Part shown: positions 1 to 64,000 of the stretch, piece by piece
How positions within the stretch are numbered: position 1 is the stretch's first letter
Layout: each line of letters starts with the position of its first letter
Origin: Cyanophora paradoxa CCMP329
Lineage: Eukaryota > Plantae > Glaucophyta
Assembly: GCA_004431415.1 (NCBI GenBank)
Contig: QPMI01000395.1
Coordinates: 124,001 to 188,000, forward strand
Length of the DNA: 64,000 nt
Reading direction: 5' to 3'
Translations under genes and position numbers: made by a program
Notes under the pieces: generated by a model
What the model saw: only the letters and a program-made list of their open reading frames with translations
Database searches by the model: none
Told to the model about the DNA's origin: nothing

Positions 1-446
1 CTCGAGATTGCAATTAATATTCGGACGCAGAAATGAATATGGACGCAATTGAAGAATAATTTCTGCGAAGCGCGAGCGCGAGCGCAAGGGCGCGCGCACC
101 ACCGCCCCGGGAGAGTCCAGCAGTTCTGCTCGAGGGCGCTGAGCGGTGAGCGAATGCACATCAAAGGCAGATCAAAGGAAGTCGAAATAAATCAAAGGCG
201 ACTTCGAAATTAATCAATAAAAGTAGATTTGATCATGCGCGCTGAGCGAGGGGTTCTATTCTGGATACCCAAGGGATTGATATCGTGAGAGAAATCGTGC
301 CCGGCGGCCAATTGCAGGGGCCAATTGCAAGCTGAAGGCGAAACTTGAAAGTGATTTTGTGCTTTGAAACTTAATCGTGACAAGCTAGCCTGTAGGTAGT
401 GGCCAGAAAAGTAATTACGGAACTCGACTCAGAGCTCGGGGCGGAC

Positions 447-1751
447 CGATGCGGGGAATGAGGGACTCGTCGGGGGGCGACTTCTGGTCCGCCCACACCT
501 GCCCCCGGGCCCGGCCCCGCGCTCAGGGCAAGACGGTTGGAGAGGCGTTATCGGGAGAAATTAAAGGGACTCGGGGCTCGGGGGGCGGGGCGGGCACGAA
601 GATGACGCCCTGGGCGAGGGCGATGGGGTAGGCGGCCACGCAGGCGCGGCGCTGGTTGATGGCGGCGCCGGCCTCGAGCTGCGGGATGCGCGCGCAGCGG
701 CCGGATCCGTCGAACTGCCACCCGTGGTAGCCGCACTCGAGCAGGGGCCCCTCGAGGCGCCCGTCGGAGAGCGGCACCGCGCGGTGCGGGCACCGGTCCA
801 GCACGCAGTGCACCGCCCCGCCCTCCCCCTGCGCCCCGGCCATGCCACCCGCGCGCGCCGGCGCCGGCGGCTCGGGACGAGAGGCGCGGCGCGGGGCGCG
901 GGGCCGGGCGGGCGGGGCGCACGGCCCAGAGGACGAGGGGCTCGTCGAAGAGGGAGAAGGCGTACGGGCGGCCCCGCGGGAAGTCCTCCACGAAGGCCAC
1001 CGGGTACCTGCGCGCGCCCCCCGCCGCCCGGGCGCGCGTGAGCCCCGCAGCCGGTCCAATGGCCCGCGCGCCGGAGCTTCGACTTCGAATTCGCGGCACC
1101 AGTTCTTGCGCCACTCGAAGGGCTGCTGCTCGCGATCGGCCGCCGGCTCCGTCTGCTTTGCCGAGCCGGCCTCGGCCGACGACGACGGGAGCGGGCACGC
1201 GAGGCCAGCAGCTTGGCCGCCCCGCGCCTCGGGCTTGCGAGCCGGCGATGCCGCGCCCGCGCCGTTGCTGCCGCCGCTGACGGGCGCGTCGGAGCCGGTG
1301 GGTGCCGGCGGGAGGGGGCTGTCGACGTCTGGGCCGCCAAGCTCCGCCCGGACCGCGAATTCGAAGCGGGCTCCTGCGCGCGCGTAAGCAACCCAAATAA
1401 AAGCGATTCCGCATGTAAGTATGCTTTTTTAAGCTGAACCGGCACGTTTTCGCGCACTCTCCCGAGCGCACCTTGGCCTGCCGCGGCCGGCCAGCCGCCG
1501 CTCATGATCAGGAGGCGCGCGGGGGATCCCACGCCCGTGAAAAAGCTCCGGCTGCAGCTGATCGCCCCCGCTGCGGCCGGACGCCTCCGCCCGGCACCGC
1601 GTGAGCCGCCGGACCAAGCGGAACGAGAGCCGGCGCGATCAGCGCCGGCGGGGCGGCCGATCGCGAGCGGCGCAATTGCAAAGACGACGAGGGGCGCGGT
1701 CGGTGCTGAGGCGCGCGGGGGAGGGATCGGCGCCGCGAGAAAGGCCGCCAT
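447..1751 (-). CDS. Rieske [2Fe-2S] oxygenase, Tic55/PAO family, plastid-targeted; 3' part not in window
   Basis: Spliced exons read FEWRKNW|YPVAFVEDFPRGRPYAFSLFDEPLVLWA|GEGGAVHCVLDRCPHRAVPLSDGRLEGPLLECGYHGWQFDGSGRCARIPQL...QGVIF|VWADQKSPP. Rieske CxH and CxxH motifs are present. N-terminus MAAFLAAP...SFFTG is transit-peptide-like. The last exon found ends at 447. Confidence 0.85.
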
Positions 1752-2143
1752 CGCTGCGAGCGGAGAGCCTAAGCTTGAGGACTCGAGCTCGGGATCCGGA
1801 AGGGAGGAAACTCGCGGATAATCCTGGCCTCGACCTCGAGCTCGCCGCGGCGCCTCGAGCTCGATCGCGAGCTTCAGCTCGGGTGCACGAGATCTAGATG
1901 CACTAGATATCGATATCGCTGCGAGCGGATTTCAACGGTTAGAATTCGATCGCGGTGAGCCTTGGGGAAGAGGAAACTCGAGGCCAGGATATCATGAGCA
2001 TGCGAGGGAAGATCTAGAGCCGCCGGCGCCCTCACGATATCGATCGCGAGGGAACTCGAGCTCCTGCGCACGATTAATTTGCCCCGGCGCCGCCGGGCCG
2101 GCCTCGCTCGAGAGGAAATAGATCTGATTTACATTGGGCCTGC

Positions 2144-2872
2144 GGCCTGCGGCCCCACGGTATGCGTATTGGTAGAAACAGGGGCCCCCCCCCACCGCTC
2201 GAGGGATGGTCGGGGGCCTGATGGGGTAGGGCGCTAAGCGCCGACAGAAATTGTCGCGGGCGATGGCAAGTCCGGCTAGAGCTTAGTCGGCTGGGCCGGG
2301 CGCGGCCGCAGGCCGCGGGCCGGGAGCCGGCTAGGCGTGGCCGGTCGCGACTTGGCTTGGTGACTTTCGGGCGCAGCCGAATGATTTTCGGTGCAGCGGT
2401 TGTTGGGGTTCGGAACCCAAGCTTAAGTCGGAACCAAATTCGGGATCCTTGAACCGTGAAAGTCCTAGAAAATACTTGCTAGTTTGCAACGCGGGCTAGT
2501 ATAAGTAGCCGCTGCCCTGCCAAAGTTGTCATTCTTTGTGAGGCGCACAGCCTCGAAATACTAGCAGCGAAACTCTGCCTCTCTGCGGCTGCACCTTGCC
2601 TTTGCAATTTGGGAGAGCCTTGCATTGAATTGCACTACTAGCTGGGATCGCATCTCAGGTCTGTTACTACTCTGTTATTAGGCCTCTGGTTAAAACCCCT
2701 AGACTATATCTGGGCCTTGCCCGGATTTAACCAGACGCTAAATAAAATTCTACTGGGGTAACGAATGGCCGAGGCCGGGGGGGAGGCTGGAATCCGGGGG
2801 ACGGGGCGAGGGCGGTCAAGGTGCTACTGGGGTGCGTCGGGGCGGGGCTGGCCGAGGAGAGAGGCGAGGCCG
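2144..2872. repeat. Left arm of a ~240-bp inverted repeat (partner 10482-10719), interrupted by an insertion at 2252-2744
   Basis: 2144-2251 is the near-exact reverse complement of ~10613-10719. 2745-2872 matches the reverse complement of 10482-10617 with more divergence. Confidence 0.9.
2252..2744 (+). mobile_element. Probable solo LTR (493 bp)
   Basis: Absent from the partner repeat arm. Flanked by AAAT duplication (2248-2251 and 2745-2748). Starts TGTCGC and ends ...TAAATA (one change from CA). Has an internal TATAAGTA and a 3' hairpin TCTGGTTAAA/TTTAACCAGA. Confidence 0.55.
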
Positions 2873-3648: not shown

Positions 3649-3683
<35 letters not shown>

Positions 3684-3830: not shown

Positions 3831-4673
3831 CCCCCCCCCCCCCCCCCCCCCGACACCCTCCCCAACCCAACCCCCGGCCCCACAAAGCGGCCCCTTCCCC
3901 CAAACCAATAGCCCTCCCCCGCGCCCCCACCCGAGGGACCCGTCCGCGATCTTCCCCCCCCCTAAACACCCCGCCCCCTTCCCGGCGCCCCCCCCCTCCC
4001 CCCCCTCCCCCCCCCCCCCACCCCCCAAGCGGGCACGTCCTCCCCCCCACCCTCGAGCTCACGCGTACGAGTGCGGCGCCACGAGTCGATTTTCCAGATG
4101 AACGATTTTTTTCGAACTCAAGCAAACCTTTGTGAATGAATTATAAATCGGTGCGTAGTCGAACCGTTTGAACGTTTAACGTCAACTTCGAATTCGTCAA
4201 GTCGTCGTCGACTCGTCGACTCGTCGTGACGGACGAGTCACTGACGACGTCCGACGGTCGTCCGACGCCGGACCGACGGTCAACGAACTCGGAACTCCGC
4301 GTCGAGTCGACGTCCGCATTGTACAGTATATGTATATGTTTATATATGCATAGTGCATATAAAAACGCCATACCGGTGCACGTATACCGTATACGGTTAA
4401 CGTACGGGTACCGGTTATAAACTCTATAAATGGACGCGACCAATGACGCCGACCATCGGACTAAATGCAGCAGTGCACGGTGCACGCGTACGCGTGCATG
4501 GCACGTGCACGTGACCTCGCCGATGATGGCGGGCATCGCCGGGCAACGCCGGGCATCGGCCGTGATTGGCGGCCGATCGATCGCTTCTCGAAAGTACTTT
4601 ATAATTATAGTCATGCTGCTGACTCACGTGCACTGAGTCATGCATGCGCATGATACGTACTATGCAGTCTATG

Positions 4674-4908
4674 CCGTGTGGCACTAAATTACCGCGGCAT
4701 AGTTAAATTACCGCGGCTAAATTAAATTACCGCGGCACCAAATTACCGCGTTTTAGAAACTTGAGGCTTGTATGGGGCGGAAATTGTAGGGGGTACTGTA
4801 TGGGGCGACAGCTCAGGAGAGAATTACGTATACCGCGGTACTAAATTACCGCGTTTTAACAAATTCTCGGCGAGGTAATTTGGTACCGCGGTAATTAAGT
4901 AGTAACTG
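4674..4908. mobile_element. MITE with AAATTACCGCGG subterminal repeats (same family as 11209-11495)
   Basis: Repeated AAATTACCGCG in both orientations; shares the core TTGAGGCTTGTATGGGGC..GGGTACTGTATGGGGCGAC with ~11311-11360. Confidence 0.7.
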
Positions 4909-5087: not shown

Positions 5088-5578
5088 TAGGGCTGTCGTC
5101 AGTCACTGACAGTCACAGTCAGAGGGTCTGACTGACCTCACTGGGTCAGCTTTTGGCTGACTGACGTTTTCTCAGTCCCATACAAAACCCTGCTGGGAGC
5201 GTGCCCCCCTGCGGGCTTTTTCCATCTAAAGCTGTCGTAGGTCGATTAAAAAATGATCTTCTGTCGTCGAAATCTTCAAGAAACCGCCCATGTGCATGGT
5301 AAGAGGCTAATGGAGTCTGACGTGCGCATGGCGGGGGCCGAATCTCCTTTTCTCGTCCTCTCTGCTCGCATAACGTGCCTGGCCTGATGCTTGGCAACTT
5401 GAAAATAGTCTTGAATGAAGTAGATAGATCGCGCTTGGGTCAATTCCTGCCAATTTCCTGGTCATTTTTCCCGGCTTTTGCACGGTAGCCTGACTTGAAC
5501 CTCGGGTTGACTGATTCAGTCACAGTCAGGGGGGCTGACGGACTGGGTCAGCCGGGGGACTGACTGACGACAGCACTA
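5088..5578. mobile_element. hAT-type MITE, copy 1
   Basis: TIR TAGGGCTGTCGTCAGTCA / TGACTGACGACAGCACTA. The 8-bp TSD TTCCGGAT lies at 5080-5087 and 5587-5594, the right copy displaced by an 8-nt micro-insertion. Near-identical to 45638-46123. Confidence 0.9.
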
Positions 5579-6480
5579 TCATAGTATTCCGGATCCGAAC
5601 TTCGGACTCTAAGTTCGGAGTTCGAACTTCGGAACTTCAAACCGTTACTTGCACGGAGTGCCACGGACTCGGGAACTTCGGAACTTCAAACCGTTAGTCG
5701 TCGCCGACTCGTCGCCGAGTCGTCGGTTACTTGCACGGTTAATTAATATTGCGGAGCGCCTCCGATCCGAATCATCCGATGCGACATCATGCGAGACTCA
5801 GCAGCGAGAGTCCAAGACTCTAGATCTGAGGCTCCGCGATCCTCCGACTTTCAAAGTTTCAAGTTTTGGCAAATTTAAATTAAAAAAACTATTGCTCGCA
5901 AGTTCAACGGTTCAACGGTTCATGATCAGACTGGCCGCTGCAGATCTCGATTCTCGAATCTCAGTCTCAAGTTGGCCGGGAACTTGCCAGGCTTGGCCCG
6001 CCGGAGCCGGGGCCAATTGCAATTTGCAATACGCCGTGACGTATACTGGAGTACGTGGTGGTATCGCATGCATTTTCATAGTGTTCAACTTTTGTCATAT
6101 TAATAATGACAGTGTTATAATTAGGTTTAATTTGACGTATACGCCGCGGCGCGTACTGCGGCGTACAGGACAGTGCGTTCACGTGCACGTAACTTCGGTA
6201 ACTTAGCTATACTACCGGTATAGCTATGATAGTACGTAATATCCGTTTCCCGAATACCCCGCCGGGCTGCGGTCGTAATAATATCCGTTCCCGTTCAACG
6301 GTTAGTACTTTAGGCTTCCTTTCCGTTTCCGTTAGTAGACTAGTAGCGATAGCTTTAATTAGGCCTATATAGCTAGGCTGGACCCATGCAGCTGCAGACT
6401 GCAGCCTGCAGTTCAAAATTCGCGAATTTCCGTGATACATTATATAATTTATATTACGTTTTTGCATCAAATTAAATTGC

Positions 6481-7909
6481 CTCTGCCCCGCTTCCGAGTG
6501 TTGGCGAGACTGTCCTCTTTTCGGTCTCCCCGTCATTCCGGCTCCCTGCTCCCCCTTCGGCGCCTCGGGTCCCATATGCGGGTCCTATCCCGCTTCCTGG
6601 CGCTCGTGAGATTCGCCGCCGGCGCCCTCGTCGGGCCCTTGCGCCCTCGAGCTCGTCTCTCTCTGCGCCGCCCATGGCCATGACCTCCGTGTCATCTGAT
6701 CCGGCGCCACCCGACCTTTCTCCAGCTTCGCTGCCCTCTCTTCGGCGCCGGCAGCGATCCCCGTCACCTGCTCGCGGCCCTTCCCCTGCCTCCGACCCTT
6801 CCTCGGCCCCTCCTCGCCTAGGCCTCTTCCGTCTCGTCGGCCCCCGCCGCATTCCCGTCGGCGGATCTCTCGATCGACCCTGGACTCTCCGCCTGCCACT
6901 GTCTGCGGGGTACCTCCGCCGCCGTGTTCGGCGCCGGCTGTCAGTACTTTGCTCGGTAGCTCCCCCGTCGTGGCTCCTCGGGGGCCTCTTCGTCGTCGTC
7001 GTTCGCTGGGTTCCGGCTCCGGGTCAGATTTCTCGCCGGGCTTACCTTCTCCTGGCTCTGCTCCTGGGCCCTCAGCTCCGGGACCGGCTTCCCCGATCTC
7101 CTCCCGGACTCGTGGTCGTACCCGTCGCCGGCTTGCCGAGCCTGCGGCTCCTTCTACTTCCCCCCGGCGGTTTGCCGGGCCGGACCCTCCGGCCTTTGTT
7201 CTTGATACCGGACTGCCGCCTTTGCCTTCGTCTTCTGCTTCGCTGGTCGCGATCGTATCCCGCCGGCGCCGGCGTACTTCTTCGTCTTCTAGTTTAGTTC
7301 GGTCTGGTTCGGATTCTGATCGTAGTGTTGATGCTAGAGTTAGTTTCAATACTAGCTATAGTCCTCGTGCTCGACCTGTTGTTCGCCGTCGTTTGCAGTT
7401 CGATTGCCCGCCTCGACCCTGGCCGGCTTTAGTGATTCCTTTGACTGTCCTTTTGCCTGCTCTTGATCCGCCTGCTCCGCCTCCTGTGTCCTCCTCGACC
7501 TCGTGCCGTAGCTCTGCCCTTTCGCATCGTCCTGCTTCGCCTCCGCCTCCATGTCGTCTTGTTGTTCCTCTTACTTGTCTTCTTCCTGTTATTTATCTTT
7601 CTCAATTTTGTCCCCCGCTTCTTAGTGATGTAATTCCTTCTGATATTGATGGTATCTCTAGCTCTGGCTCTTCTTCGTGTCAGTTATCCTCTGTCCCTAG
7701 ATCTGCTCGATTTATCGTCTCTTCTCGCTATCGATCTGTCTCGAGCTCTGTGTCTTTCCTTTTTTATTGTCGATTTTGGCTCTTTGTCTTATCTTTCTTC
7801 GTGCTCTTGTCTTAGTTATTTTGCTTTTTTGTCTTTATGCCCCCTGGGCAGCCCCCGCAGTGCTGGTGTCTAGAGACTGTGGCCGGTAATTCACCAAAAA
7901 AAAAAAAAA
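6481..7909 (+). mobile_element. 5'-truncated non-LTR retroposon (TPRT insertion) with Ser/Pro/Arg-rich ORF remnant
   Basis: A14 tail at 7896-7909. Exact 13-bp TSD CAAATTAAATTGC at 6468-6480 and 7910-7922. A reading frame is open from the 5' boundary; the ORF 6949-7815 has T-rich third positions. Confidence 0.9.
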
Positions 7910-10481: not shown

Positions 10482-10719
10482 CGGCCTCGCCTCCCTCTTC
10501 GGCCCGCCCCGCCCCGACGCTCCCCAGGAGCACCTTGCAATTGACCGCCCTCGCCCCCTCTCCCGGATCCCAGCCTCCCCCCCCGGCCTCGGCCCTTAGT
10601 TACCCCAGTAGCATTTCTGTCGGCGCTTAGCGCCCTACCCCATCAGGCCCCCGACCATCCCTCGAGCGGTGGGGGGGCCCCCTGTTGTTACCAATACGCA
10701 TTCCGTGGGGCCGCAGGCC
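10482..10719. repeat. Right arm of the inverted repeat (partner 2144-2872)
   Basis: Reverse-complement match to the left arm; contains hairpins GGCGC-TTA-GCGCC and GGCCCC...GGGGCC. Confidence 0.9.
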
Positions 10720-11208
10720 TCACCCATACTGGAAATATTAATTAAGCAAATTGTTTTTTTAAGCTACATGCAATAAGTGTTTTTAATATTAATTAAAGTA
10801 TACGTATACGTACATGTTCAGTCGCAAGGTTTGAAAAGTTCTTGAAAACCATGCGGAGCGCGAGTCGGTGCGCCTCCGCGATCGGCCGGACCGCGAAGTG
10901 AAAAAATCTAAAAAAACCACAATGCAACCTATAGCTACTGGCTGCAACTACCAGTGTCTACCACTGCAGCTGGAAACGTTAACGTTAACTTCGTGGGAAG
11001 CTTAAGCTTTTTGTTTTAAGCTTACATCATCAAGTTGCATCAACTTGGCAACGTTAACTTGCATGCAATTAACTCTGGCAAATATTAACTTAGTAACTTT
11101 AGTAACGGCGCGCCGCGGCGGGCCGCGCGGCGCCCGGGCGCCGCCGGCGGGGCAAGTCGCCGCCACTAGCGGTACTAGTATACGGAGTGGGCCACTGGGC
11201 CCATACTA

Positions 11209-11495
11209 CCGTCGGGCATTAAATTACTGCGGCGTTAATTAACGCGGTTTCAAAACTGGCACTCCACTGAGCGAAATACCGCGGTACCAAATTAACGCGG
11301 TTTTAAATAATTGAGGCTTGTATGGGGCAGTAATTTGATGGGGTACTGTATGGGGCGACCTGTCAGCAGCAAATTACCGCGGCACCAAATTACCGCGTTT
11401 TAACAAACCTTTGGCGCGTTAATTAGGTACCGCGTTAGTTAAGTGCCCGCGATTAGTTAAGTGCCCGCGGTACCGCGTTAGTTAAGTGCCCGCGG
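11209..11495. mobile_element. TA-flanked (Tc1/mariner/pogo-like) MITE with triplicated right end
   Basis: TA|CCGTCGGGCATTAAATT ... TTAGTTAAGTGCCCGCG occurs three times, followed by TA; homologous to 4674-4908. Confidence 0.7.
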
Positions 11496-11680
11496 TACTT
11501 AGGCGATTGCAAGCCTGGCCATGCATGGCGTGGGCACTGGGCACGTCGGCTGTTGGGGCCTGAGCTCAATCTTTAGTAATATAACTTGGGGGATCATGAT
11601 TCATTATTATTGGAGGATTTATCGCATTGAGTCAGTGGAGGCGATTCGAAGCTTAAGCATGCACTGCAGACTGCACGTGG

Positions 11681-11920
11681 AATTGCCGTGTATTGCTGAG
11701 CGGCCGAATTCGGCAATTTAGAGACACGGCAATTCTCAGGGGGTACTAGTACCGGAATAGCTGTGGCGATAAATTGCCGAATCCAGCGTCTGCTGAGCCT
11801 CTGCAGCAGTCTCTGCTCAGACTTCTGTATGCCGGGCTAGGGAATTACCTACCCCCCCTCTGCGAATTCCGCCTCAGCAATTTACGGCAATTTAAAACAT
11901 CGGCTAAATAAGTATTCCTA
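11681..11920. mobile_element. MITE-like element with AATTGCCG repeats (inverted relative of 17168-17365)
   Basis: AATTGCCGTGTATTGCTGAG / CTCAGCAATTTACGGCAATT inverted pair; GTGGCGATAAATTGCCGAAT shared in reverse with ~17310-17330. Confidence 0.6.
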
Positions 11921-12140
11921 GTTTAATTTCCTGCAGTCGAGTCGTCGCGGCCGCCAGGCGGCCGGCGCCGGGCCGCCGCGCGGCCGATCGCGAGTCGCGA
12001 TCGCGACTCGCGACGTCGACGTCGACGTCGATGTCGACGCCGCGGATCCGGACGCGGACTGACGTCCGACGGTCCAGTCGTCGTGCAGCGACGTCCACAT
12101 GTACATGCGTACATGTACTGTGATGCATATGTACAAGCTA

Positions 12141-12327: not shown

Positions 12328-13131
12328 ACGGTAACACGGTATACGTATAGGCGGGCGTTTCGAATTCGCCCCGGCGGAATTCGAAGCCTCGCGAGTCGCG
12401 ATCCGGTAATCGGAGCCTCGCGGGCCCGGGCCGACCCGGCCGAGTCAGAAGACTCCGAGTCTAGCGGCTCTAGCGGCGAGTCTAGCCCCTAGCTATCATA
12501 GTATAGGCCTAGAAGATCTGTCCGGTCGACGGTCGTCGGACTCCGATGATAGTACGGTACCAAAGTTTAATTTTCAAGTTTGAGGCCCGACTATATAGCT
12601 ACTAAAGTTTTATCGTATACTAAACTTGAGGTGCTGGGGGGGTACGTATTGCAGTCACAGTTGCAGCGCGCGGGTCGTCCTATTATGACCGGACTCCTAT
12701 GGCTACCAAACCGACTATGCAACTGGCGCAAACCCCGCGGGATAACTAATTATTTTGGGGTCTTAAATATTACCCGAATTACAGTAACTAAGCAGGCCCG
12801 CGGGCCGGCGGCCGCGGGCTTGGCCATGTCCCACAGTCCCAGTACTAGTGGGCCAGCTAGTAGTGGCTTCCAGACTAAGTTCCAGACTTCCAGTGGCTTG
12901 CCCGGGCGGCCGCACTGCGCCGTGCGGCACTGTCGATGTCACAGTGTTAACGTTGCACATGCAGTGTCATGCACTCGGCGCAGTGCGCTGCTGTATACGT
13001 ACATGTGCGCATGCACATCGCCTTCAGGTTTAATTTGCAATAGTAGCTCGTGGTTCGGCACTAAGATAGCTGATCGAAACAGCAGGCGAGCATCCGCAGA
13101 GCAGGATCCCCGGATTAGCGGATCTATATCG

Positions 13132-15353: not shown

Positions 15354-15384
<31 letters not shown>

Positions 15385-16148
15385 CTGGTCGGAGGTGACC
15401 ATGCATATGCATCATGGCATGTCACTGGCATGTTACAAATCAATCAAATGGCCGAAGCGAAGAGTATACGTAGAGGAGGTCGAAGTCCAGGGCTTCGAGA
15501 ATTCGAGCTCGCTAACTATGATCATGAGCTCGCCTGGCCCAGTGGGAAAGGGTCACCGGGTGGCCGGCGTGCTACGTTTACGGTATATATATACGTAGTG
15601 GGGCGCGCAGCGCCCCGCGGCCGGCCCGGGGCCCGCACCGCCGGCCGCGGCCACGGGCCACGTGCCACGGTGGATATGGGCCCGTGGACGACGTCGTTAC
15701 AGTTGGGGTTGCAAGTTGTAGTGGATGATGATTATAAAATTATATTCGATGACGATACTTCGCGCTTCTTTGCGCTTCGAATTCTTCGCGTACTTGTACA
15801 TGCGCGCCGCGCCGGCGGCGTGGGGACTCGGGAGGCGTAAACACAGGCAGCTGCAGGTGAAGGTGTCACTGTAGCTATATATCAATATTGGCGCAGGCCT
15901 AGGCACAGCGGGCTCGATCGCGAGCTCACCTGCGGCTGCGCACCCGCCTCGCATATGCCGCGCGCAGTGCATGCCGCAGTGCGCAGGCCTAGGCCTAGCT
16001 ATATATAGGGCGATCTTCTTCTCAGAGTCTCAGAGTCTCTGAGTCTCACGCGCGCGAGCTCAGCTCCGCCTTTCGAGATTCGCCGATCGCGAGACTCGAA
16101 AGCCCCCACAATTGCAGCCTTGAGCTTGAATTTGAGTTAACGTTCCTC

Positions 16149-17018
16149 CGATCCGCGCGCGCCGCGGCGCGCGTACGCGAAACTGTTTATTTAAATTTGC
16201 TCGGGGTTCAACGGTTAGCTGGGCGCGGCGGGAGAGGCTATAGCTAGGCTCGAGCTCATATACGGCTCTAGATCTCGAGCGCTAGCTAGCGCAGCTCCCC
16301 GATCGCGAGCCTGAAGAGTCCGAGCCTCGGCCGCGGATCATCCGATGATCGGATCCGGACTGCCGCGGGCCGGACCGGATCCCGGAGGAGCCGGTCGGCG
16401 ATCGGCCGCGGCCGGGGCGCCGCCGGGCCGCGGCGCCGATCATCGATATCCGACATTTACAGCGCTAGCAGCTCGCGAGCTGCAGCTGTGGCAGCCGCGC
16501 GCGGAATTGCAGTACACGCGCGCGCGCGCGCGCACGAGGTGAGCAGACCGTACAGGGGGGTTCAGGTCGCAGTCAGACTCGCAGACTCGCAGGCTCGCAG
16601 CTCGTCTGGGTACAGACTGTACAGTGGAGGATGGGGGGCCCAATCGTGTAGGGGTAACGAGTCGAGACTTTTTTCACGGCATGAAGTTCCGATCGCGACC
16701 ATGCATGATATATGCATGACCACATGCATGCAAATTGCAAAGGAACTTCCGAAGTTCAAGGCTTCGAATTCGACGTCGACCGTCGAGTCGGCGTCGACTC
16801 GCGGCGTCGAGTACTACTAGGCTAGTAGGCTAGTCGGCCGCGTCGACGTCCGGCGTCGACTCTCTTCCAAGTTCGATCGCGAACACTCCTGTGTGTGCAC
16901 AGTCTGAGTGCACTGTGCACGTGCTGTGCCAGTACTGTGTTTTCTAGCAGCAGCTGCAGCAGCAGGCAGTGCCAGGCACGCGCGCGCGAACAGCAGCAGC
17001 TTGCCCGATCAGCTGCAG
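16149..17018 (+). repeat. 870-bp direct duplication, copy 1
   Basis: Near-identical to 18413-19289; visible differences are a 1-nt indel or two and one 8-nt insertion. Confidence 0.95.
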
Positions 17019-17167
17019 GCTTGAAATGAATGTAGGGTTCAACCGTTCAAGTTGCATCATGATCAGCTGTACGCGTGTTTTAGCCGACTGACCAATGACA
17101 CGACAGAAAATATTCACTTCGATTCACTATAGCAGTAGTATAGCTACGTACGGATACCGCTACACTG

Positions 17168-17365
17168 TAGGACGGCTTTTTTAGCCGTAGTTTTAAATTG
17201 CCGTAAATGGCCGAGACGCTGAATTCGGCAATTGTAAGCATCGGCAATGTTGCTGGGGGTAGTAGGGGTATTTTTAGGCCGCAATAGAGCTTCGGAGCGA
17301 AAGCCTGCATTCGGCAATTTATCGCCACGGCAATTCCGGTTTTGGGCGAATTCGGCAATTTTACT
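17168..17365. mobile_element. MITE-like element related to 11681-11920
   Basis: TAGGA..TTTAGCCG..GTTTTAAATTGCCGTAAAT matches the reverse complement of ~11880-11920. Confidence 0.55.
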
Positions 17366-17677
17366 CTACGGTTTTCGAGGCCGATCATCGGATGGAACGC
17401 AGTAATTTGGTAGCGCAGACTGCAGCTGCGCAGTAAAGCGCCTACCGGCGCAGAAAATTTGGAACGCAGTAATTTGTGGCGCAGTAAATAAGTATTACAC
17501 GCCGAACAAAATACACGGTAAAAAAATACATGGTAGTTATACGCGCGGCGCGCGGCGGCCCCTTCGAATTTTTCGAATGATCGACGGAGCCAATCGCACG
17601 ACGTCAGACGTCCGAGCTCCGACGCTCGAGACTCGAGAGTCGGACCGCGCCTCCGACTCTCCGACGTCGATCGCGAC

Positions 17678-18408
17678 TAGGGGTGCGGCTTGACCGCCAG
17701 AAAGTCGGCTCAAGTCAAGCCAAGCCCGGAGCGCTCGCGGCTAAGCCAAGCCAAGCCGGCCGGCCGGCCCGGACAAGCGCTTGGCCACTTGGCCGGGTCA
17801 AGCGCTTGGCCCGGCTTGAGGCAAGCCGAAGGGGGGGTACCCTTTCACAGGCCCTTAGCGCCGCAGCGATTAGCGTGTTCGAATTCAGCAGCTTCAGCTT
17901 CGAATTCGAAAGGAACACGCACATCTAATCGAGCTGAAGAGGGTCAGCCTCGCTGGAACCGCTAATGGCATCTGCCTTAAGCTTGCGCTTGCCAGAACCG
18001 GTAGAGAGCATACCTGCCTTGTCGAAAATCGGAATGCCAGCTCTAGCCACGTGCACGACTAGTACTCGTAAAGAAACCGTTAACGTTGAACATGATTGAT
18101 CATCGGATGAAACAGAGTCGTCGACGTCGGCAAGGCTAGATCTAGATCTGTTCTCGCTGACACAGAGGCCGCCGTTGAAACGAGATGTTAACGTTGCCGT
18201 CGGCCCCCTTGCCGAGCAGCGTCTGCACGCTCTTGCTCTTGGCCATGGGCGGCATGCCGGCGATGATGCGAACGCAGGCGCCGCCCCCCCCCCCCCCCCC
18301 CCCGCCGGGCTTGAGCCGGCTTGAGCCGGCCAAAAGCCGGGCAAGCGCTTGCCGCCCCAGCCCGGCTTGAGCTTTGGCTCAAGCGCTTGACGGCAAGCCG
18401 CAGGCCTA
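17678..18408 (-). mobile_element. Internally deleted hAT transposon with transposase remnants
   Basis: Ends TAGGGGTGCGGCTTG / CAAGCCGCAGGCCTA. TSD ATCGCGAC/ATCGCGAT (7 of 8 match). CAAGC/GCTTG subterminal repeats. The minus strand encodes MPPMAKSKSVQ.. and hATC-like GGLCVSENRSSLADDSVSSIMF after micro-insertions are removed. Confidence 0.8.
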
Positions 18409-18412
18409 ATCG

Positions 18413-19289
18413 CGATCCGCGCGCGCCGCGGCGCGCGTACGCGAAACTGTTTATTTAAATTTGCTCGGGGTTCAACGGTTAGCTGGGCGCGGCGGGAGAG
18501 GCTATAGCTAGGCTCGAGCTCATATACGGCTCTAGATCTCGAGCGCTAGCTAGCGCAGCTCCCCGATCGCGAGCCTGAAGAGTCCGAGCCTCGGCCGCGG
18601 ATCATCCGATGATCGGATCCGGACTGCCGCGGGCCGGACCGGATCCCGGAGGAGCCGGTCGGCGATCGGCCGCGGCCGGGCGCCGCCGGGCCGCGGCGCC
18701 GATCATCGATATCCGACATTTACAGCGCTAGCAGCTCGCGAGCTGCAGCTGTGGCAGCCGCGCGCGGAATTGCAGTACACGCGCGCGCGCGCGCGCACGA
18801 GGTGAGCAGACCGTACAGGGGGGTTCAGGTCGCAGTCAGACTCGCAGACTCGCAGGCTCGCAGCTCGTCTGGGTACAGACTGTACAGTGGAGGATGGGGG
18901 GCCCAATCGTGTAGGGGTAACGAGTCGAGACTTTTTTCACGGCATGAAGTTCCGATCGCGACCATGCATGATATATGCATGACCACATGCATGCAAATTG
19001 CAAAGGAACTTCCGAAGTTCAAGGCTTCGAATTCGACGTCGACCGTCGAGTCGGCGTCGACTCGCGGCGTCGAGTACTACTAGGCTAGTAGGCTAGTCGG
19101 CCGCGTCGACGACTCGACGTCCGGCGTCGACTCTCTTCCAAGTTCGATCGCGAACACTCCTGTGTGTGCACAGTCTGAGTGCACTGTGCACGTGCTGTGC
19201 CAGTACTGTGTTTTCTAGCAGCAGCTGCAGCAGCAGGCAGTGCCAGGCACGCGCGCGCGAACAGCAGCAGCTTGCCCGATCAGCTGCAG
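18413..19289 (+). repeat. 870-bp direct duplication, copy 2
   Basis: Near-identical to 16149-17018; starts within the hAT right flank. Confidence 0.95.
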
Positions 19290-19311
19290 CCAGCGCGCGC
19301 GCGGGCGCGCA

Positions 19312-19552
19312 CACAGCTCGTTTTTTTTCCTAATCGACCCAACACGGCCCGGATATGGGCAAGGGTAGCCGGCGATCGCGATAACTTTTCACCCGCCGCA
19401 GAACGGCTAGTCTCCTCGCAACAGCTTGTAGCCGGCATGCTACCGGGTAGATTGCACTAGCTAAAGCCGGGGAATTCCGAAAACCCGAGGGGAATTTAAC
19501 GAAACCGGATATTCGGCCGTGTCGGGTCGACCGGTAAAAAAAACGAGCTGTG
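19312..19552. mobile_element. CAC..GTG-terminated (CMC/CACTA-like) MITE
   Basis: TIR CACAGCTCGTTTTTTTT..TCGACCC.ACACGGCC / GGCCGTGT.GGGTCGA..AAAAAAAACGAGCTGTG; flanked by CA/CA. Confidence 0.8.
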
Positions 19553-19874
19553 CACGAGAAACGAATTTCGAGGTCCCGGCGGGCCGGCGGCGGCGGGTCC
19601 GATTCAACAGCCTGGCAGCATCAGCGAGATCATAGGGGGATCGATCGCTGCGATCGTGATATCACGCTTTCCTGGCCAAGTGCAGAGAGCCAGCGAGCGT
19701 GCATCGTGCCCCCGGCCCCCGGCCGTAGAGTGCCGAGTGCGCACCGCGGTGCCAGACGCGGCGCACGCGTGGAATCGGAGCGCGCGTAGACCACATCCAC
19801 ACGGAGCGGATTGCGGCCTGCAGTCCGCGTAGCTGCTGCGCAAGACGGAGGGGAGCGGCGACCAGTGCAATGCC

Positions 19875-27855: not shown

Positions 27856-27888
<33 letters not shown>

Positions 27889-33760: not shown

Positions 33761-33891
33761 CGTATTCCTTGCAAACAAGATGCACGATGCGATGCCACCA
33801 ACATTTGCCGCGGAGTGCTGGCGCGTGCTTTACGCAGCCTTTGAAAAGAAAGCACTGTGCGGATCGATTGAGGTCTCTCTTCTAAATGTTA

Positions 33892-34077
33892 AATGCCTAT
33901 CAGTCTAAGAAAAGAGGAAGCCAAGAGACACGATGCGGCTTGCATTCGAAATAAATATAAGAGGCGGAGCGAGAATGCCTATGATGCCTATCAGTCTAAG
34001 AAAAAGCTTAAGAGGAAGCCACGAGACACGATTCTGCTTGCATTCACAATAAATAAGAGGCGGTGCGAGGAATGCCC
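33892..34077. repeat. ~90-bp tandem duplication between convergent genes
   Basis: ATGCCTATCAGTCTAAGAAAA..GAGACACGAT..GCTTGCATTC..TAAGAGGCGG occurs twice. Confidence 0.8.
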
Positions 34078-34116
34078 TCGAGACGTCTTCACTCGTGCTG
34101 CAAGCAGCAGAGGAAA

Positions 34117-43100: not shown

Positions 43101-44955
43101 GGGCTCGGCGTCTCCATCGGCGACGGGCTGGGCGACGGGCTCGGCGACGGGCTCGGGGTCGGGGTCACTGTCGGCGCTGGGAGTCGAGAGCGTTCATTGC
43201 ACGGCGGACGGGGGACTATTGTGCACCGGTGCCGTTAAACCACATCTGTGCTAAGGATATGGGTGAAGCCGCGTTCAAGGTGTTATCGCCGAGCGCAAAC
43301 ACGCTGTTCGGATAGTTCAGGCATCGATATCGTGATTCTATAACCACGCAGGCCAGACGCACAGAGAGCATGTTTGGCGGTCGGACCCATAGGCGGAGTA
43401 CGAGTGGCCCCAGCTTTGAGTAACGGTTGTGAAGTTGCTTGCATCTACGCGAAAGCACACCCTCAGACGCGAGACGCGAGCTTCCGGATTGCGCAGCCAC
43501 GCGGTCACCTGTAGTGTTCAAGATGTTCGTTTTCCCGGTTTGACCATCGGAGTGGATCAAATAATTTCCACAGGATCCAAGCATAAGGAATGGGTAAGAA
43601 GCCTGAAGAGGGGTGAGTGTAGTGGTTCCGACGAATTTAAAAGCCTTTGTAGTGGCCGATAGGTCCACATAGCTGCACAGCGCAAAGAATGAGCACAGCA
43701 AAGGATGGAAGAGCAGTACAAGCTGGCTTCGCACTACAGCGCGTTTGGGATTGCGAGTGCGGTACTGGTACCGCCATTGCCTCCAATGACGTACCACTTG
43801 CTGTCTGCGCGAAAGACAGCGTCACAATACCGCTTCTTTTCCAATATTCAGGGCATCGCAATCGCACCGAGTCTTGCGCAGGCGGGATTCTTTCGGCCCT
43901 GTATCGACCCCGCCCCGCCCGTCGAGATCGATGTCGTCCACGAAGCGCCGCCCCAGCTGCGCTGATGTGAGTCTTGTAATGATACCCAGCCATACCCGAC
44001 GCGAGAGAGACCTGATGAGGTCTCCGAGGAATCCGTTTAGTAACCCCGAGTAACCTCCGAAGACCTGGCCGCAAAGCGGCAGCATCAAGCGATGGTCACC
44101 GGCGGAAGACATAGAAGAGCTGTTCACCCAAACCGACCCGCCGTAGACAGTCATACCTGGCAATATATATCGATCGGACGGCGTAAACGTAAAGTCTGCG
44201 ATTTGCACGCACAGTGATTTTGCCGGGTTGACGGCAAGGCCGTACGCGTTGTGCGGCTGGAGAGAGCGATTGGAAAGCTGTAGAAGTCCGTCACAGTTGT
44301 ACCAGAGTTGAAGTTGAATCCACCTGCGCGCATCCATTACACGCGTGCACGCGATCGCAGCGCGCGGCCGCGGGCCGCATCCGCACCACCGCAGTAAATG
44401 GTCGACGCTTCATCCCAGGCGCACCTGCGGGCGATCAGAGACCGACAAGCAGAGAAACCAAATCGGGTACGCGAAGTCTCCGATGCCGGCCGAGCCTACG
44501 GTGGTGTCGCCCGCCGGGCCGGGCAGCGTGGCGGTCGCTGGAAGGGTCCACGTCGACGTCTCCAGGTTCAACGTCGCAATGGTGTTCTTATAAATGCGCA
44601 AGCCGCCCGCCGAATTTTCATAGCCCCCGAACACCCCGAAGATTCGGGTTGAGCCGCTTCGAAAGACGAGCCCAGCGGCATTCACCCGCCCAGCAGCTGG
44701 AAACGAGGGAAGGGTCGTTGATAGCAGATTCGCGGGGGCTGCGCATGGAGGACCGTGTCAGGGGCACTGCGTCTAGAGAAGCACTTATGGCCAAGTGGTC
44801 GGCGCACCTGTTTGGCCCAGTGCTGACAGCACCAGCGAGAATTGTATCAGGCCGCGCAGAATTAGAGCATGCGGCGATCGCCGCGCCGCCCGCCCTTTTT
44901 CTCCAATTGCAAGCAGTGCCCTGAGAATTGGAGAAGGCTGGTAAGAGAGGCTCAT
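34117..44955 (-). CDS. Giant multi-pass membrane protein: signal peptide, Kelch-like repeats, (SP)n stalk, tandem Ig-like domains, PKD-like domain, TRP/Flc-like transmembrane region
   Basis: Exons join in frame: [19 protein letters not shown]|APANL..GVFGGYE; VFGGYSG; TPSPSPSP repeats; [13 protein letters not shown]; [20 protein letters not shown]; [15 protein letters not shown]; [13 protein letters not shown]|GDNFGKW|FG|[32 protein letters not shown]; ends GAVTIHL*. Confidence 0.82.
42825..43168 (-). repeat. Coding tandem repeat, 42-bp unit [14 protein letters not shown] (about 5 copies) plus (SP)n
   Basis: GGCGACGGGCTGGGCGACGGGCTCGGGCTCGGCGTCTCCGTC repeated. Confidence 0.95.
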
Positions 44956-45637: not shown

Positions 45638-46123
45638 TAGGGCTGTCGTCAGTCACTGACAGTCACAGTCAGAGGGTCTGACTGACCTCACTGGGTCAGC
45701 TTTTGGCTGACTGACGTTTTCTCAGTCCCATACAACACCCTGCTGGGAGCGTGCCCCCCTGCGGGCTTTTTCCATCTAAAGCTGACGTGGGTCGACCAAA
45801 AAATGATCTCCTGTCGTCGAAATCTTCAAGAAACCGCCGCGGCGCCCATGTGCATGGTAAGAGGCTAATGGAGTCTGACGTGCGCCTGGCGGGGGCCGAA
45901 TCTCCTTTTCTCGTCCTCTCTGCTCGCATAACGTGCCTGGCCTGATGCTTGGCAACTTGAATGAAGTAGATAGATCGCGCTTGGGTCAATTCCTGCCAAT
46001 TTCCTGGTCATTTTCCCCGGCTTTTGCACGGTAGCCTGACTGAACCTCGGGTTGACTGATTCAGTCACAGTCAGTGGGGCTGACGGACTGGGTCAGCCGG
46101 GGGACTGACTGACGACAGCACTA
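45638..46123. mobile_element. hAT-type MITE, copy 2
   Basis: Same TIRs as 5088-5578; perfect 8-bp TSD GTCTGTAC at 45630-45637 and 46124-46131. Confidence 0.95.
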
Positions 46124-52176: not shown

Positions 52177-52210
<34 letters not shown>

Positions 52211-52665: not shown

Positions 52666-53351
52666 GATTAAAGATTTTCTATGTGTGTGAAGTGCCGTGG
52701 ACGCCATAATGGATTTCGTATTTCACTGAGTCTTTTTTTTGCAAAAGTGGACGTCGCATTGATACACCACGGCACATGTATCAATGTTCTACGTGACGTG
52801 CCCTTCCGACCGGTCAACTATCTAGCCGAAGGTGCTATCTAGGTGCTTCGTATTTCACTGAGTCAGCTGCAGATGCATACTATGATAGCTGTAGATCAGG
52901 GATTCTAAGTATTTGCAGAGTGCGGATTAGACGTTCGCCAAGCTTAAACGCATGCTTCATTGTTTCGCTTGTATCGATTAAGATTTTCTCTGTGTGTGAA
53001 GTGCCGTGGACACCATAATGGATTTCGTATTTCAGCTGCAGATGCATAGCTGTAGATCAGGGATTCTAAGTATTTGCAGAGTGCGGATTAGACGTTCGCC
53101 AAGCTTAAACGCATGCTTCATTGTTTCGCTTGTATCGATTAAGATTTTCTCTGTGTGTGAAGTGCCGTGGACACCATAATGGATTTCTTATTTCAGATGC
53201 ATATGCATATGCATAGCTGAATTTCAGGGATTCTAAGATACCAGACTTATTTCTAGATATATACACTGTGACAGCACCCTATATAGCTATTTGCAGAGAG
53301 TTTCTAGATATATACACTGTGACAGCACCCTATATAGCTATTTGCAGAGAG
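52666..53351. repeat. Complex tandem repeat (~160-bp units, plus a 51-bp unit twice)
   Basis: AAGATTTTCTC.TGTGTGTGAAGTGCCGTGGAC.CCATAATGGATTTC occurs three times; TCTAGATATATACACTGTGACAGCACCCTATATAGCTATTTGCAGAGAG twice. Confidence 0.9.
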
Positions 53352-61709: not shown

Positions 61710-62503
61710 GACGGATCGGGCTTCCGCGCATGTGAAATCGATCGCGAGTCTCTCGTGAATTCAAGGATTGGCCTTGCAGGAAGGGTTCAATGACTTTCGC
61801 CTCGTTTTCGCGGGGAGTGCAGGTGGGGAGGCCCTTTCAAATTTGGGCCCGTGGGGGTGGGGGGGATGGGGTCTGGTGTCACAGCATGCATGCGCAGTGT
61901 CAAGGGACCGAAGTGTGTCCGGTTGGGTGCGCCAGAGAGTGTACGAGCAAGGATCTGCATGCGCAGGAGAGTGCATGCGATGGTTCATTTCAATAATTTG
62001 CTGCTCAGCGGCTGTTTCCCTACTTCCCCTAGGCCTGCAGCTTCTTCCGAAGTTCGGCCTTTTTTTTTTACGTAATCCTGTAGTGTATTAGCCTATAGCT
62101 AGTAGGGGACGGAGCCCCGACTACACAACAGCTACTGCTATTACAGTGCCGCAGTGCCATCGTACTACCCTAGGCCTAAGCCTACCAAAAAACACAACAC
62201 GCTAGTCTACTTCCCCACTTGTGGGCCTCCGACTAGACGAACCCCTAGGGATAACCCTACGCTAGCGCTGACCCAAGCTTAGCTCTCAAACTACGTGAGC
62301 AGCCCCGGGAAATCCGGAGCCTCCTCGGCACCGCCGAGGCAGGTATACGTAGGTCGAGCTCTCGAGGGGGGAGGGAGCTGGGGCTGGGAGGCCTAGGAGG
62401 CTGCCCGCACACGCGTGGAGCAGCGGGGGGCCCGTCCGAGGACGTCGACGTCGACGTCGACGTCGACGTACCCCCGGGGCCCGTCTGCAGACGGGCCCGG
62501 AGG

Positions 62504-62811
62504 ACACATATACAACGCCCGGCTTTTAGACCTCGGCTAATTTAAATTGATATCGTTAGTATATAACCTGTATTTATAATAGATCTATCGTGAATATGTG
62601 TGTGTTTTATCTGTTATATGTATTTATTTTATCGTGAGTTATAGCTTCTTTTTAATAAAATATGTGAAATATGTATAGTTTATGTGAAGTTTAGCTATAT
62701 TCTCGATGAGTAGACTTATATATATCGTGAGTTTCATTATAGTATAGGTGTGACTCAACTTAGTTTAATTATAACTTGCCTCAGTCTAAAAGCCGGGCGT
62801 TGTATATGTGT
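62504..62811. mobile_element. AT-rich element with perfect 28-bp inverted repeats
   Basis: ACACATATACAACGCCCGGCTTTTAGAC (62504-62531) / GTCTAAAAGCCGGGCGTTGTATATGTGT (62784-62811); no TSD seen. Confidence 0.75.
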
Positions 62812-62974
62812 GTTGTTCTGAATTTTCAATGCATAAGCGACGATCATGCGTCGTTTCATCAAAAACAACTACCATGAGCTGCATGGAACGTTCTGTATGC
62901 GGCTCTCTATAAAACAAAGTAGATCTATGATATATTATGATTGATTCTTTTGTATTTTAATTGGTCTTATTCAG

Positions 62975-64000
62975 TGTTACAGGTGTTACAGGTTTATCCC
63001 AAAGTCCGCCCTAGGAGTGGGGTCTTGGTTCCCGAGTTTGGGCAAGACCTGTAACACCTGTAACAACGTAAACAATTATCGTGTGCTGCATAAAACATTT
63101 CGCGCGCATCGAAAATATGTGATAGTGAATAGTTTCGCACTGAAAACGATACGAAATTGATCGTTATAATACAAAAATAATTACTACTGATATTATTATG
63201 ATATACTAAGACTGATATTTTGTTGTTTTAATAGGTTCTTACTGAATTAGGTCAGTGTTACAGGTGTTACAGGTTCATCCCAAACTTTGCCCTAGGAGGG
63301 GTGGGGATAGGAAACTTTGGATAGACCTGTAACACCTGTAACACCTTACTGATTAGCACGTAAATGCATGAGTTTCGCATCGAGATCGTGCGGCTACACA
63401 TAGAAACTACGCAATTTACCGCAACTACTCAAAGAAACTACGCAATTTAATACCGGAACTACTGAAAAGATACCAAAACTACGCAACTACGCAACTTTCA
63501 GAAAAAGTTTGAAACTCGGGCTGGAAAAATTTAGAAAAGTGTAAAACTTGCGTAGTTGCGTAGTTTTGGTTTCGTTTGCGTAGTTTTGGTTTCGAATTGC
63601 GTAGTTTTTCATGGTAAGATGAGTAGTTTCAAGTAGTTTATATATTATAAAGTAGTTTCTTATTAATATCAATATGATTCTATGATATATACCATGCTTT
63701 CTCTACTGAAAAGAGCGCCGGCATACTACAAGGGAAGCTACGCGATAGTTTCGCACTGAAACACGACCGTTTTATAGGCTACGCAATAGTCTCGCACTGA
63801 GAAGCATGCGGGCAATCGGAGACTACGCAATTTAACGTAACTACGCATGAAAACTACGCAATCTGATCGCTTTTAATACCGAAAACTACACATTTAATAC
63901 CAAAACTACGCAACTACGCAACTTTCTGAAAAAGTTTAGAAGTTGGCGGGGAAAAAAATTAGAGAAGTGAAAAACTTGCGTAGTTGCGTAGTTTTGGTAT
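62975..64000. repeat. Array of four hairpin modules with iterated arms in AT-rich DNA
   Basis: (TGTTACAGG)2..(CCTGTAACA)2 at 62975-63065 and 63256-63343; (ACTACGCA)2..(TGCGTAGT)2 at 63472-63570 and 63897-64000. Confidence 0.9.

Follow-up and report, generated by a model that had tools for sequence, protein, structure and literature searches.

Results

Micro-insertion motifs exceed expectation across the locus

Which process has filled the non-coding DNA of this locus with hundreds of short palindromic motifs that obey one rule? In each motif, a triplet NNN has become NNN-rc(NNN)-NNN, where rc is the reverse complement (+6 bp), or NNN-C-rc(NNN)-G-NNN (+8 bp). We analysed these motifs, here called scars, over the window, that is, the whole stretch of 64,000 nucleotides; coordinates are given without strand. 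The genome of the window is GC-rich and algal-type.

Order-2 Markov shuffles made within 2-kb blocks served as controls. NNN-x-rc-y-NNN 11-mers with any spacers occurred 183 times in the 64 kb, compared with about 48–57 expected from the shuffles. With the spacer pair (C,G), which defines the 8-bp form, 92 exact 11-mers were counted in 1..64000 against 5.7 ± 2.5 in the composition-matched shuffles, a 16-fold excess, whereas the mirror pair (G,C) gave 18 against 6.3. A preliminary description of this DNA had quoted seven motifs, each of which proved exact in its place, and had found more than 30 11-mers by eye, a claim that the count of 92 bears out. Its expectation of one per 65 kb applies at uniform base composition; the real composition gives about 6, and the excess is still 16-fold. 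Spacer-less NNN-rc-NNN 9-mers, the 6-bp form, numbered 541 in all (55 ± 8 in the shuffles). After removal of (CG)n and (TA)n runs, 460 non-trivial 9-mers were left, compared with 41 ± 5; they formed 374 separate clusters, and 316 of these were single events. Triplets with at least one A/T accounted for 349 9-mers where 13 were expected. Enrichment over Markov shuffles and a C/G spacer bias, both anticipated in the preliminary description, were thus found in the window.

Greedy un-insertion took out 3494 bp from the window and about 350 bp from the shuffles. Exact scars amount to 5.5% of the window, with a maximum of 14.6% in a 4-kb bin, and decayed scars would raise the overall share; the earlier suggestion that insertion and excision cycles wrote much of the non-coding DNA was overstated. 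The densest bin (16001..20000) holds 88 9-mers and 19 C/G 11-mers, with 14.6% of its bases removable as exact scars. The stretch 32001..44000 is sparse and near the shuffle level (6–9 9-mers per 4 kb, about 1% removable) and is probably genic or unique DNA. The 8-bp scars are clustered, with 23 neighbours within 60 bp against 13.2 ± 4.2 (p about 0.016), which fits local hopping.

All 32 double-strand triplet classes were found among the scars, and the rule explains an excess of restriction-site-like hexamers. CTCGAG and GACGTC are examples of a few frequent hexamers. Their frequency, together with the finding that 37% of all 6-bp palindromes fall within a 9-mer, might suggest that palindromic hexamers are retained by selection as protein-binding or modification sites. 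We regard this as very improbable, since every triplet class is used, the motifs appear as indels between young repeat copies, scars are nested and decay by single mismatches about as in neutral DNA, and a likely genic stretch is avoided.

Scars arise by insertion into plain triplets

The polarity of the events was read from eight paralogue, family or target-site duplication (TSD) comparisons. Among the ten indels of at least 6 bp between repeat copies, eight obeyed the rule, every one inserted into a plain triplet, in agreement with the earlier claim of 6- or 8-bp insertions. For the 8-bp form, the scar on TCA at 52855..52865 has its plain counterpart near 53032, in the repeat unit that follows, and the scar on ATA at 52877..52887 corresponds to plain ATA at 53046. 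The scar on CGC at 45835..45845 lies within one copy of a hAT-type MITE, the other copy being plain at 5285. At 5577..5587, the scar on TAT straddles the end and TSD of a hAT-type MITE, and taking out its 8 bp restores the 8-bp TSD TTCCGGAT, as had been proposed. An 8-bp insertion at 19106..19116 keeps the 3-1-3-1-3 frame with A and C as spacers and is plain at 16843; an imperfect tandem duplication of 8 bp within palindromic surroundings is an alternative reading. The plain copies at 5285, 16843, 53032 and 53046 are those named in the preliminary description.

For the 6-bp form, TTG-CAA-TTG at 10535..10543 and TAC-GTA-TAC at 4825..4833 have plain paralogues near 2800 and 11370, respectively. 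TCG-CGA-TCG at 7247..7255 lies in a poly(A) retroposon copy, and some other copies of this family in read sets lack exactly the 6 bp at 7247. Scars are also nested: at 12488..12510, an 8-bp scar sits in a 6-bp scar within another 6-bp scar, three events that collapse stepwise to CCT, and at 4624..4640 an older 8-bp scar on TCA has had its C spacer overlaid by a 6-bp event, CAC-GTG-CAC. Larger indels between paralogues were retroposon-like insertions, not elements with a 3-bp TSD. A restored hAT transposase frame upon scar removal near 18060–18185 was not reproduced, as judged by ORF length.

The duplicate pair 16149–17018 / 18413–19289 differs by one event, that at 19106..19116, with 0 substitutions in about 870 bp, indicating that the process is recent. 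The other two repeat pairs carry two events each, against nine and five substitutions.

Short-range template switching, or slippage in palindromic microsatellites, might create and expand such motifs during replication. The window does contain a run with an 8-bp period, at 16020, and (GACGTC)n arrays, at 12012 and 62441, consistent with this, and mutations by short template switching are known, with local inverted copies and small palindromes as their products (PMC5453318, PMC7954356). However, most clusters are single events, and the paralogue comparisons indicated that the plain sites were not palindromic before insertion. Template switches copy a nearby template and vary in length, whereas the inverted piece here is always the site's own 3 nt, flanked by its direct repeat, and the optional C and G have no local template. 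Replication error is therefore an improbable source of the scars.

Unit length, spacers and flanking bases are specific

The direct repeat in every scar was 3 nt, as in the 3-bp TSD of CACTA/En-Spm elements, and in all events rc(NNN) lay between both TSD copies, as expected of an inverted flank copy (P nucleotides) from a hairpin. The same design with units of 4–8 nt gave only (CG)n/(TA)n runs or hexamer arrays in the 64-kb window. Among the exact forms scored, only full forms reached 13- to 14.5-fold enrichment, partial-P forms being at 1.2- to 1.4-fold, and the heterogeneous outcomes expected of hairpin footprints (variable P length, deletions) did not appear. One-sided forms (C only or G only) were at about 2-fold, the same as mirror controls, and represent background. 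NNN-CG-NNN and other 2- or 4-nt spacers gave no signal, a CC spacer excess was traced to (CCCCG)n arrays, and no other spacer pair was enriched comparably to (C,G). Plain TSD retention was only 1.27-fold enriched.

The C and G spacers were independent of the −1 and +1 bases at plain sites and thus untemplated by the flanks. A centre copied from the flanks in the manner of hAT is thereby excluded, and the evidence points to an outside source for the spacer base, for example the end of an element. A hAT-style model with a 5-bp TSD (C-NNN-G), in which the spacers are complements of the flank bases, fits the scar at 52877 but fails at 45835, 52855 and 5577; it was also ruled out because the 11-mers are not tied to C at −1 or G at +1. 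At the 6-bp sites, base −1 was C 105 times (71.5 expected) and base +1 was G 113 times (68.5 expected), a C^NNN^G bias with the two-fold symmetry to be expected of a dimeric transposase.

Independent sequence data reproduce the motifs

Logan contigs of four public runs (2012, 2019 and two from 2024; four studies or years) cover two unique stretches, 4034–4750 and 5549–6508, with 0 substitutions or other base differences; the sole gap in the match to the window was 1 bp, in one run. These stretches hold 32 motifs (21 of the 6-bp form and 11 of the 8-bp form), all of which were reproduced. The motifs therefore do not reflect an assembly artefact, a concern for which the preliminary description had looked to independent reads; we found no point in support of a sequencing or assembly artefact and give that explanation almost no credence. 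The four runs look like one strain, with no indel polymorphism scorable between them.

Search for a responsible element

Within the 64-kb window, we found no element that combines a 3-bp TSD with C...G (or G...C) ends. CAC...GTG ends with a 3-bp TSD gave 17 candidates in the window compared with 15 in a shifted-TSD control, that is, no sign of a resident copy; CACT...AGTG pairs in the window yielded nothing convincing, and none of the 47 pairs from a strict scan of the window for terminal inverted repeats belonged to a 3-bp-TSD family. This absence is weak evidence, because 100–1000 genomic copies would predict only 0.06–0.6 copies per 64 kb. Two candidates were rejected: the TSD of the MITE at 19312–19552 (CACAG...CTGTG) measures 2 or 4 bp rather than 3, and the inverted repeat of CACTAAATTACCGCGG at 4682, considered as an element terminus, continues outwards. 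A Pfam scan of 29 ORFs detected no transposase, and an Rfam scan returned nothing. The retroposon 3' end had 0 matches in a metagenome scan; a protein search for further parts of the genome gave no matches for its one query, and two exact-protein look-ups returned no record. The scars themselves reveal only the outermost element base, C on the left and G on the right. C...G ends fit this reading, but so, equally, would G...C ends: had the base been kept by the opposite strand, the spacer C would be complementary to a 5'-G at the end of the element.

Discussion

The pattern consists of insertions in 10- to 16-fold excess with a 3-nt unit, untemplated C/G, a base bias at the 6-bp sites, nesting and recency. 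From it we infer a transposon, flank hairpins and an element end that would supply the C: the motifs are rather probably scars left by insertion and excision cycles of cut-and-paste elements with 3-bp target duplications. The elements may be CACTA/CMC-like or belong to another 3-bp-TSD family. An inserted element would have NNN on either side, and excision would turn each flank into a covalently closed hairpin. Opening by a host nuclease would take place off the apex of each hairpin, by about 2 nt or more; the tail of the left end would then begin to read rc(NNN), and that of the right end would finish it. The tails would overlap in register, pair and be sealed, giving NNN-rc(NNN)-NNN (+6 bp). 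If the first nick fell one base inside the element, each hairpin tip would gain an extra base, C on the 3'-ending strands, and the product would be NNN-C-rc(NNN)-G-NNN (+8 bp). The product would be stereotyped because, wherever off the apex the hairpins are opened, both P-tails spell rc(TSD), with an overlap that is in register. This two-hairpin model, suggested for CACTA elements in the preliminary description, reproduces both products exactly; the C...G-ended element that it calls for did not turn up in the window.

Coordination of the two ends, with one-sided C or G forms at background, argues for excision scars, as does the use of all triplet classes, which matches the variable 3-bp target of CACTA. 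Against them stand an outcome that is almost deterministic here, unlike the heterogeneous known footprints, the A and C spacers of the 19106 event, which symmetric element ends do not explain, the slight TSD retention and the unenriched NNN-CG-NNN. Plant CACTA, hAT, Mutator and other footprints are heterogeneous, with deletions and filler, and only 8 of 94 rice excisions were rated 'perfect' (PMC4423477); Ds left 28 different footprints in Candida (PMC5873905).

It is established that hAT, Transib, RAG and MULE excision passes through hairpin flanks and leaves palindromic P-insertions and microhomology joints (PMC5873905, PMC5499845). The literature searched contained no demonstration of hairpin excision by CACTA/CMC transposases and no description of a uniform, genome-wide scar signature. 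hAT elements (Ac/Ds, Hermes) likewise leave palindromic additions centred on the former junction and joined through microhomology of opened hairpins (PMC5873905, PMC2921059). However, the hAT centre is the complement of the flanking base, the hAT TSD is 8 bp and dozens of variants arise, whereas the scars here have no centre or a fixed, flank-independent C/G, a 3-bp unit and a nearly invariant product. V(D)J recombination and Transib-RAG share a flush nick by a CAC-type end, a perfect flank hairpin and off-apex opening that yields P nucleotides (PMC5499845), but RAG and Transib duplications are 5 bp, and their joints are diversified by trimming and N addition, whereas the scars are untrimmed. 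With the same triplet at the end of both flanks, the two P-tails here would be in register when they meet. CACTA/En-Spm (CMC) elements duplicate 3 bp at variable targets and end in CACT(A/G)...(T/C)AGTG, hence in C...G (PMC4423477 Table 1, PMC6379663); they differ in that no copy lies within the window and reported CACTA footprints varied (PMC6379663). PIF/Harbinger and piggyBac also have short TSDs (3 and 4 bp, respectively), but each has a specific target (TWA, TTAA) and in most cases leaves by precise excision (PMC4561436, PMC7351741), whereas here every triplet class occurs, without preference for TAA/TTA, and a scar is the rule.

A transposon-independent process would instead have a host or domesticated nuclease make 3-bp staggered breaks or aborted target cuts, with the ends filled, hairpinned or snapped back and joined by rc(NNN) overlap, sometimes with a C added to each 3' end. 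The window holds no matching element, the near-deterministic product is unlike known excision footprints (PMC4423477) and the rate is high relative to substitutions, all of which agree with such break and repair. However, an element end offers a simpler source for a C that is fixed, symmetric and untemplated at both 3' ends, the concerted ends and symmetric site bias still suggest a transposase-like dimer, and no known repair pathway yields a fixed 3-nt inverted triplication. We consider break and repair unlikely, although it deserves more weight than replication error. Whether the cuts come from 3-bp-TSD excision or from an element-free, transposase-like nuclease, there is about an even chance that a single near-deterministic, hairpin-type process inserts 6 or 8 bp into triplets at random, at a rate of roughly at least one tenth of the base-substitution rate.

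The rule has a practical use, since in-silico 'un-insertion' can help in aligning repeats, dating copies and repairing reading frames. If no transposon is involved, the scars represent an undescribed mutational signature. A hairpin-type process, if real, would account for more small insertions than any other source and would contribute measurably to the build-up of intergenic DNA (5–15% as still-exact scars). If the scars are excision footprints, they would document, as fossils, hundreds of thousands of transposition cycles (about 1 per 150 bp here) and give direct in vivo evidence of flank-hairpin excision in a 3-bp-TSD superfamily. How an element is cut, flush or one base inside, with its ends in concert, would thereby be recorded in vivo on a genome scale for the first time. 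Transposon excision alone could then be a leading indel process, able to lengthen intergenic DNA and fill it with palindromes.

Two insertion forms are enriched in the window

Each of the seven motifs quoted in the preliminary description was found with the reading and at the coordinates reported there. The G+C content of the window was 64%, and the bins spanned 51% to 78%; expected counts were obtained from Markov sequences of order 1 to order 3 made in 2-kb blocks, which preserved local composition. The 11-mer pattern NNN-x-rc(NNN)-y-NNN, in which rc(NNN) is the reverse complement of the triplet and x and y are spacer bases, occurred at 183 sites against 48-57 expected. In 92 of the 183, x was C and y was G. 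This C/G class (the 8-bp form, a plain triplet plus 8 bp) was expected only 5.7 ± 2.5 times, a 16-fold excess, and the mirror G/C class was found 18 times against 6.3 expected. The spacer-less 9-mers NNN-rc(NNN)-NNN (the 6-bp form, a plain triplet plus 6 bp) numbered 541 against 55 ± 8 expected, and 460 against 41 ± 5 when (CG)n and (TA)n runs were left out. These 460 formed 374 separate clusters, 316 of them single events; 9-mers on triplets with at least one A or T numbered 349 against 13. We call one exact copy of either form a scar.

Related designs showed little or no such enrichment. In the window, units of 4 to 8 nt of the same design were merely dinucleotide runs and palindromic-hexamer arrays, and NNN-CG-NNN was at background level. 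An excess of CC as the spacer came from numerous arrays of (CCCCG)n, (CGCCC)n and (GGC)n units at positions 20000-31000, where G+C content is very high (74-78%). Triplets separated by one or two palindromic bases were enriched just 1.2-1.4-fold, isolated tandem triplet duplications only 1.27-fold, and one-sided spacer forms about 2-fold, matching their mirror controls. Two forms alone stood out, the complete 6-bp form (13-fold) and the complete 8-bp form with C/G spacers (14.5-fold). Template switching as the source of the motifs is contradicted by several results. All 32 double-strand triplet classes were in use, indicating that there is no TWA-type target. A 9-mer contained 37% of the 6-bp palindromes of the window; the idea that selection for palindromes keeps the motifs is likewise at odds with several results.

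The motifs arise as recent insertions

In a gapped self-comparison of the window, three paralogue pairs aligned well and several others less so. We scored ten indels of at least 6 bp, seven from paralogue alignments and one each from a TSD (target-site duplication) comparison, a tandem array read by eye, and read data. Eight of the ten fitted the rule: 45835, 52855, 52877, 5577 and 19106 (8 bp), and 10535, 4825 and 7247 (6 bp). The exceptions were insertions of 12 bp at 5398 and 10 bp at 63863. The partner copy had the plain triplet for every fitting indel, indicating that the events were insertions.

The direct ~870-bp duplicates at 16149-17018 and 18413-19289 had no substitutions and differed solely by one rule-fitting 8-bp event and a separate 1-bp indel, suggesting that the duplication took place very recently or that a young element is present twice. 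The two copies of a ~480-bp hAT-type MITE (5090-5578 and 45640-46123; ends TAGGGCTGTCG...) had nine substitutions and two rule-fitting events, including 5577 at the edge. Their 8-bp TSDs were GTCTGTAC for the copy at 45.6 kb and, after scar removal, TTCCGGAT for the copy at 5.1 kb, where the empty site is itself a near-palindrome of ~30 nt. The 161-bp tandem units had five substitutions and two rule-fitting events, including 52855 at the edge. Events in pairs with so few substitutions indicated that the process is recent, and from these small numbers we infer an insertion rate on the order of one-tenth that of substitutions, or higher. One-mismatch relatives of the 9-mer were ~150-200 above control relations (complement-only or reverse-only middle triplet), and the excess of exact forms was ~240-300, a relation that would roughly match neutral decay across ~0.2 substitutions per site, a noisy estimate.

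Other repeats in the window were also noted. The T-run at the left end of a ~113-bp retroposed unit (52733-52845) is a poly(A) tail read from the other strand, so that the unit has minus-strand orientation. The 17-bp direct repeat on both of its sides contains an 8-bp scar, which is therefore older than the retroposition. Positions 6482-7905 hold a 5'-truncated poly(A) retroposon (LINE/SINE-like) between perfect 12-bp TSDs, CAAATTAAATTG; its summed contig depth, up to ~1000x that of unique DNA, indicated a very high-copy family. A foldback-like repeat family with AAATTACCGCGG-type subterminal motifs (4685-4900 and 11190-11500) had a contig depth of ~90x unique DNA, and a 6-bp scar was among the differences between its two copies. 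A 308-bp cassette at 62504-62811 is closed by 36-nt inverted repeats (ACACATATACAACGCC...).

Independent runs carry the same motifs

The test stretch was present in 24 public runs of one organism. Logan contigs from four runs (2012, 2019 and two of 2024) covered 4034-4750 and 5549-6508, which carry 21 motifs of the 6-bp form and 11 of the 8-bp form, with no substitutions and a single 1-bp gap in one run. The four runs behaved as one strain, and their agreement is uninformative on polymorphism. An artefactual origin of the motifs is contradicted by several results.

Spacer bases and insertion sites

Among 85 distinct 11-mers, neither C at -1 nor G at +1 was required; the C and G were thus not copied from the flanks, indicating that the spacer bases originate outside the site. 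The two ends were concerted, either both flush or with an extra base on both. A hAT-like scheme, with a 5-bp duplication C-NNN-G and spacers complementary to the element-adjacent bases, fitted 52877 and failed at 45835, 52855 and 5577. At 244 distinct 6-bp events, the plain sites were biased with two-fold symmetry: C preceded the triplet 105 times (71.5 expected) and G followed it 113 times (68.5 expected). This polarity was absent from the 8-bp events, although the difference between the two forms was weak (p = 0.026). Same-type neighbours within 60 bp of 8-bp scars numbered 23, against 13.2 ± 4.2 when labels were shuffled over all scars (p ~0.016), an excess that small local duplications may inflate.

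A proposed hairpin mechanism and the search for its agent

The preliminary description attributed the motifs to excision of a transposon with 3-bp TSDs. An element of this kind would excise to leave both flanks closed as hairpins, and off-apex opening would add palindromic tails to them. With an identical triplet at the end of each flank, the left tail would start, and the right tail finish, by reading rc(NNN). Opening at the usual ~2 nt from the apex would give the tails one base in common, and longer tails more; the in-register joint would be NNN-rc(NNN)-NNN whatever the tail length, so that the stereotypy would require no special enzyme, provided that hairpins are consistently opened off the apex, ends are not resected and microhomology guides the joining. 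If the nick fell one base inside the element, each hairpin tip would hold one element base, which the top strand would show as a left-hand C and a right-hand G. Retention on the opposite strand of the complement of a 5'-G end would give the same product, making 'C...G ends' one reading among others. The interpretation is partly supported: the mechanism is plausible in this sharpened form and is the simplest scheme giving both products, with a transposon as its putative agent. It is established that hAT, Transib/RAG and MULE elements produce flank hairpins, P-insertions and microhomology joints (PMC5873905, PMC5499845). The TSDs of CACTA elements are 3 bp long, their targets vary, and their ends read CACT(A/G) (PMC4423477, PMC6379663).

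A window scan for elements ending in CAC...GTG and flanked by 3-bp TSDs gave 17 matches against 15 in a shifted control, and neither CACT...AGTG pairs nor a strict TIR scan yielded a 3-bp-TSD family within the window. Two element look-alikes failed on inspection. The 241-bp MITE at 19312-19552 (ends CACAGCTCG...CGAGCTGTG; single copy in the window) admits a TSD of 2 bp (CA) or 4 bp (GCAC) and none of 3 bp. The larger paralogue indels were retroposon-like: a 493-bp insertion at 2252-2744, relative to the inverted paralogue 10482-10722, has this look because it lacks a TIR, is A-rich at the 3' end and has AAAT as its target repeat. The two sides of a ~5.6-kb stretch (11751-17340) are inverted blocks in which GGCAATT-type subterminal repeats abound (36 nt at 92%, 51 nt at 82%); neither true termini nor a TSD could be found for it, and its ORFs had no Pfam match. 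With 100-1000 genomic copies, less than one would be expected per 64 kb, so absence from the window is weak negative evidence.

Taking ~0.006 scars per bp, ~0.1-0.2 substitutions per site and a genome size on the 100-Mb scale suggested by contig totals, we roughly estimate that ~0.001-0.01 excisions per genome per generation would be needed, for which 100 copies at 1e-4 each would suffice. The observed scale is plausible on this argument.

Relation to known footprints and extent of the scars

Palindromic excision footprints are already known as a kind. Those of plant elements are heterogeneous (PMC4423477, PMC5873905), whereas the scars of the window represent a near-deterministic outcome, a real difference. 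On account of this difference, a nuclease-and-repair process acting without a transposon stays a live alternative to transposon excision. In the literature searched, with most subscription papers outside its scope, we found no single invariant product of this type, although an earlier description is possible, and no description of the C/G variant; nor did it describe nesting or a density of ~1 per 150 bp genome-wide (1 per 37 bp in the densest bin).

When exact scars were stripped out greedily, over several rounds, the window lost 3494 bp (5.5%), against ~350 bp in shuffles. The removable share per 4-kb bin ranged from ~1% (32-44 kb) to 14.6% (16-20 kb), and 25 events were exposed once an inner scar was taken out. 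The nested scar at 12488-12510 reduced to CCT in three steps, and that at 4624-4640 to TCA in two. The proposal that insertion and excision cycles may have written much of the non-coding DNA was thus overstated at 5.5% of the window; scars are a substantial, but not dominant, share of present intergenic DNA.
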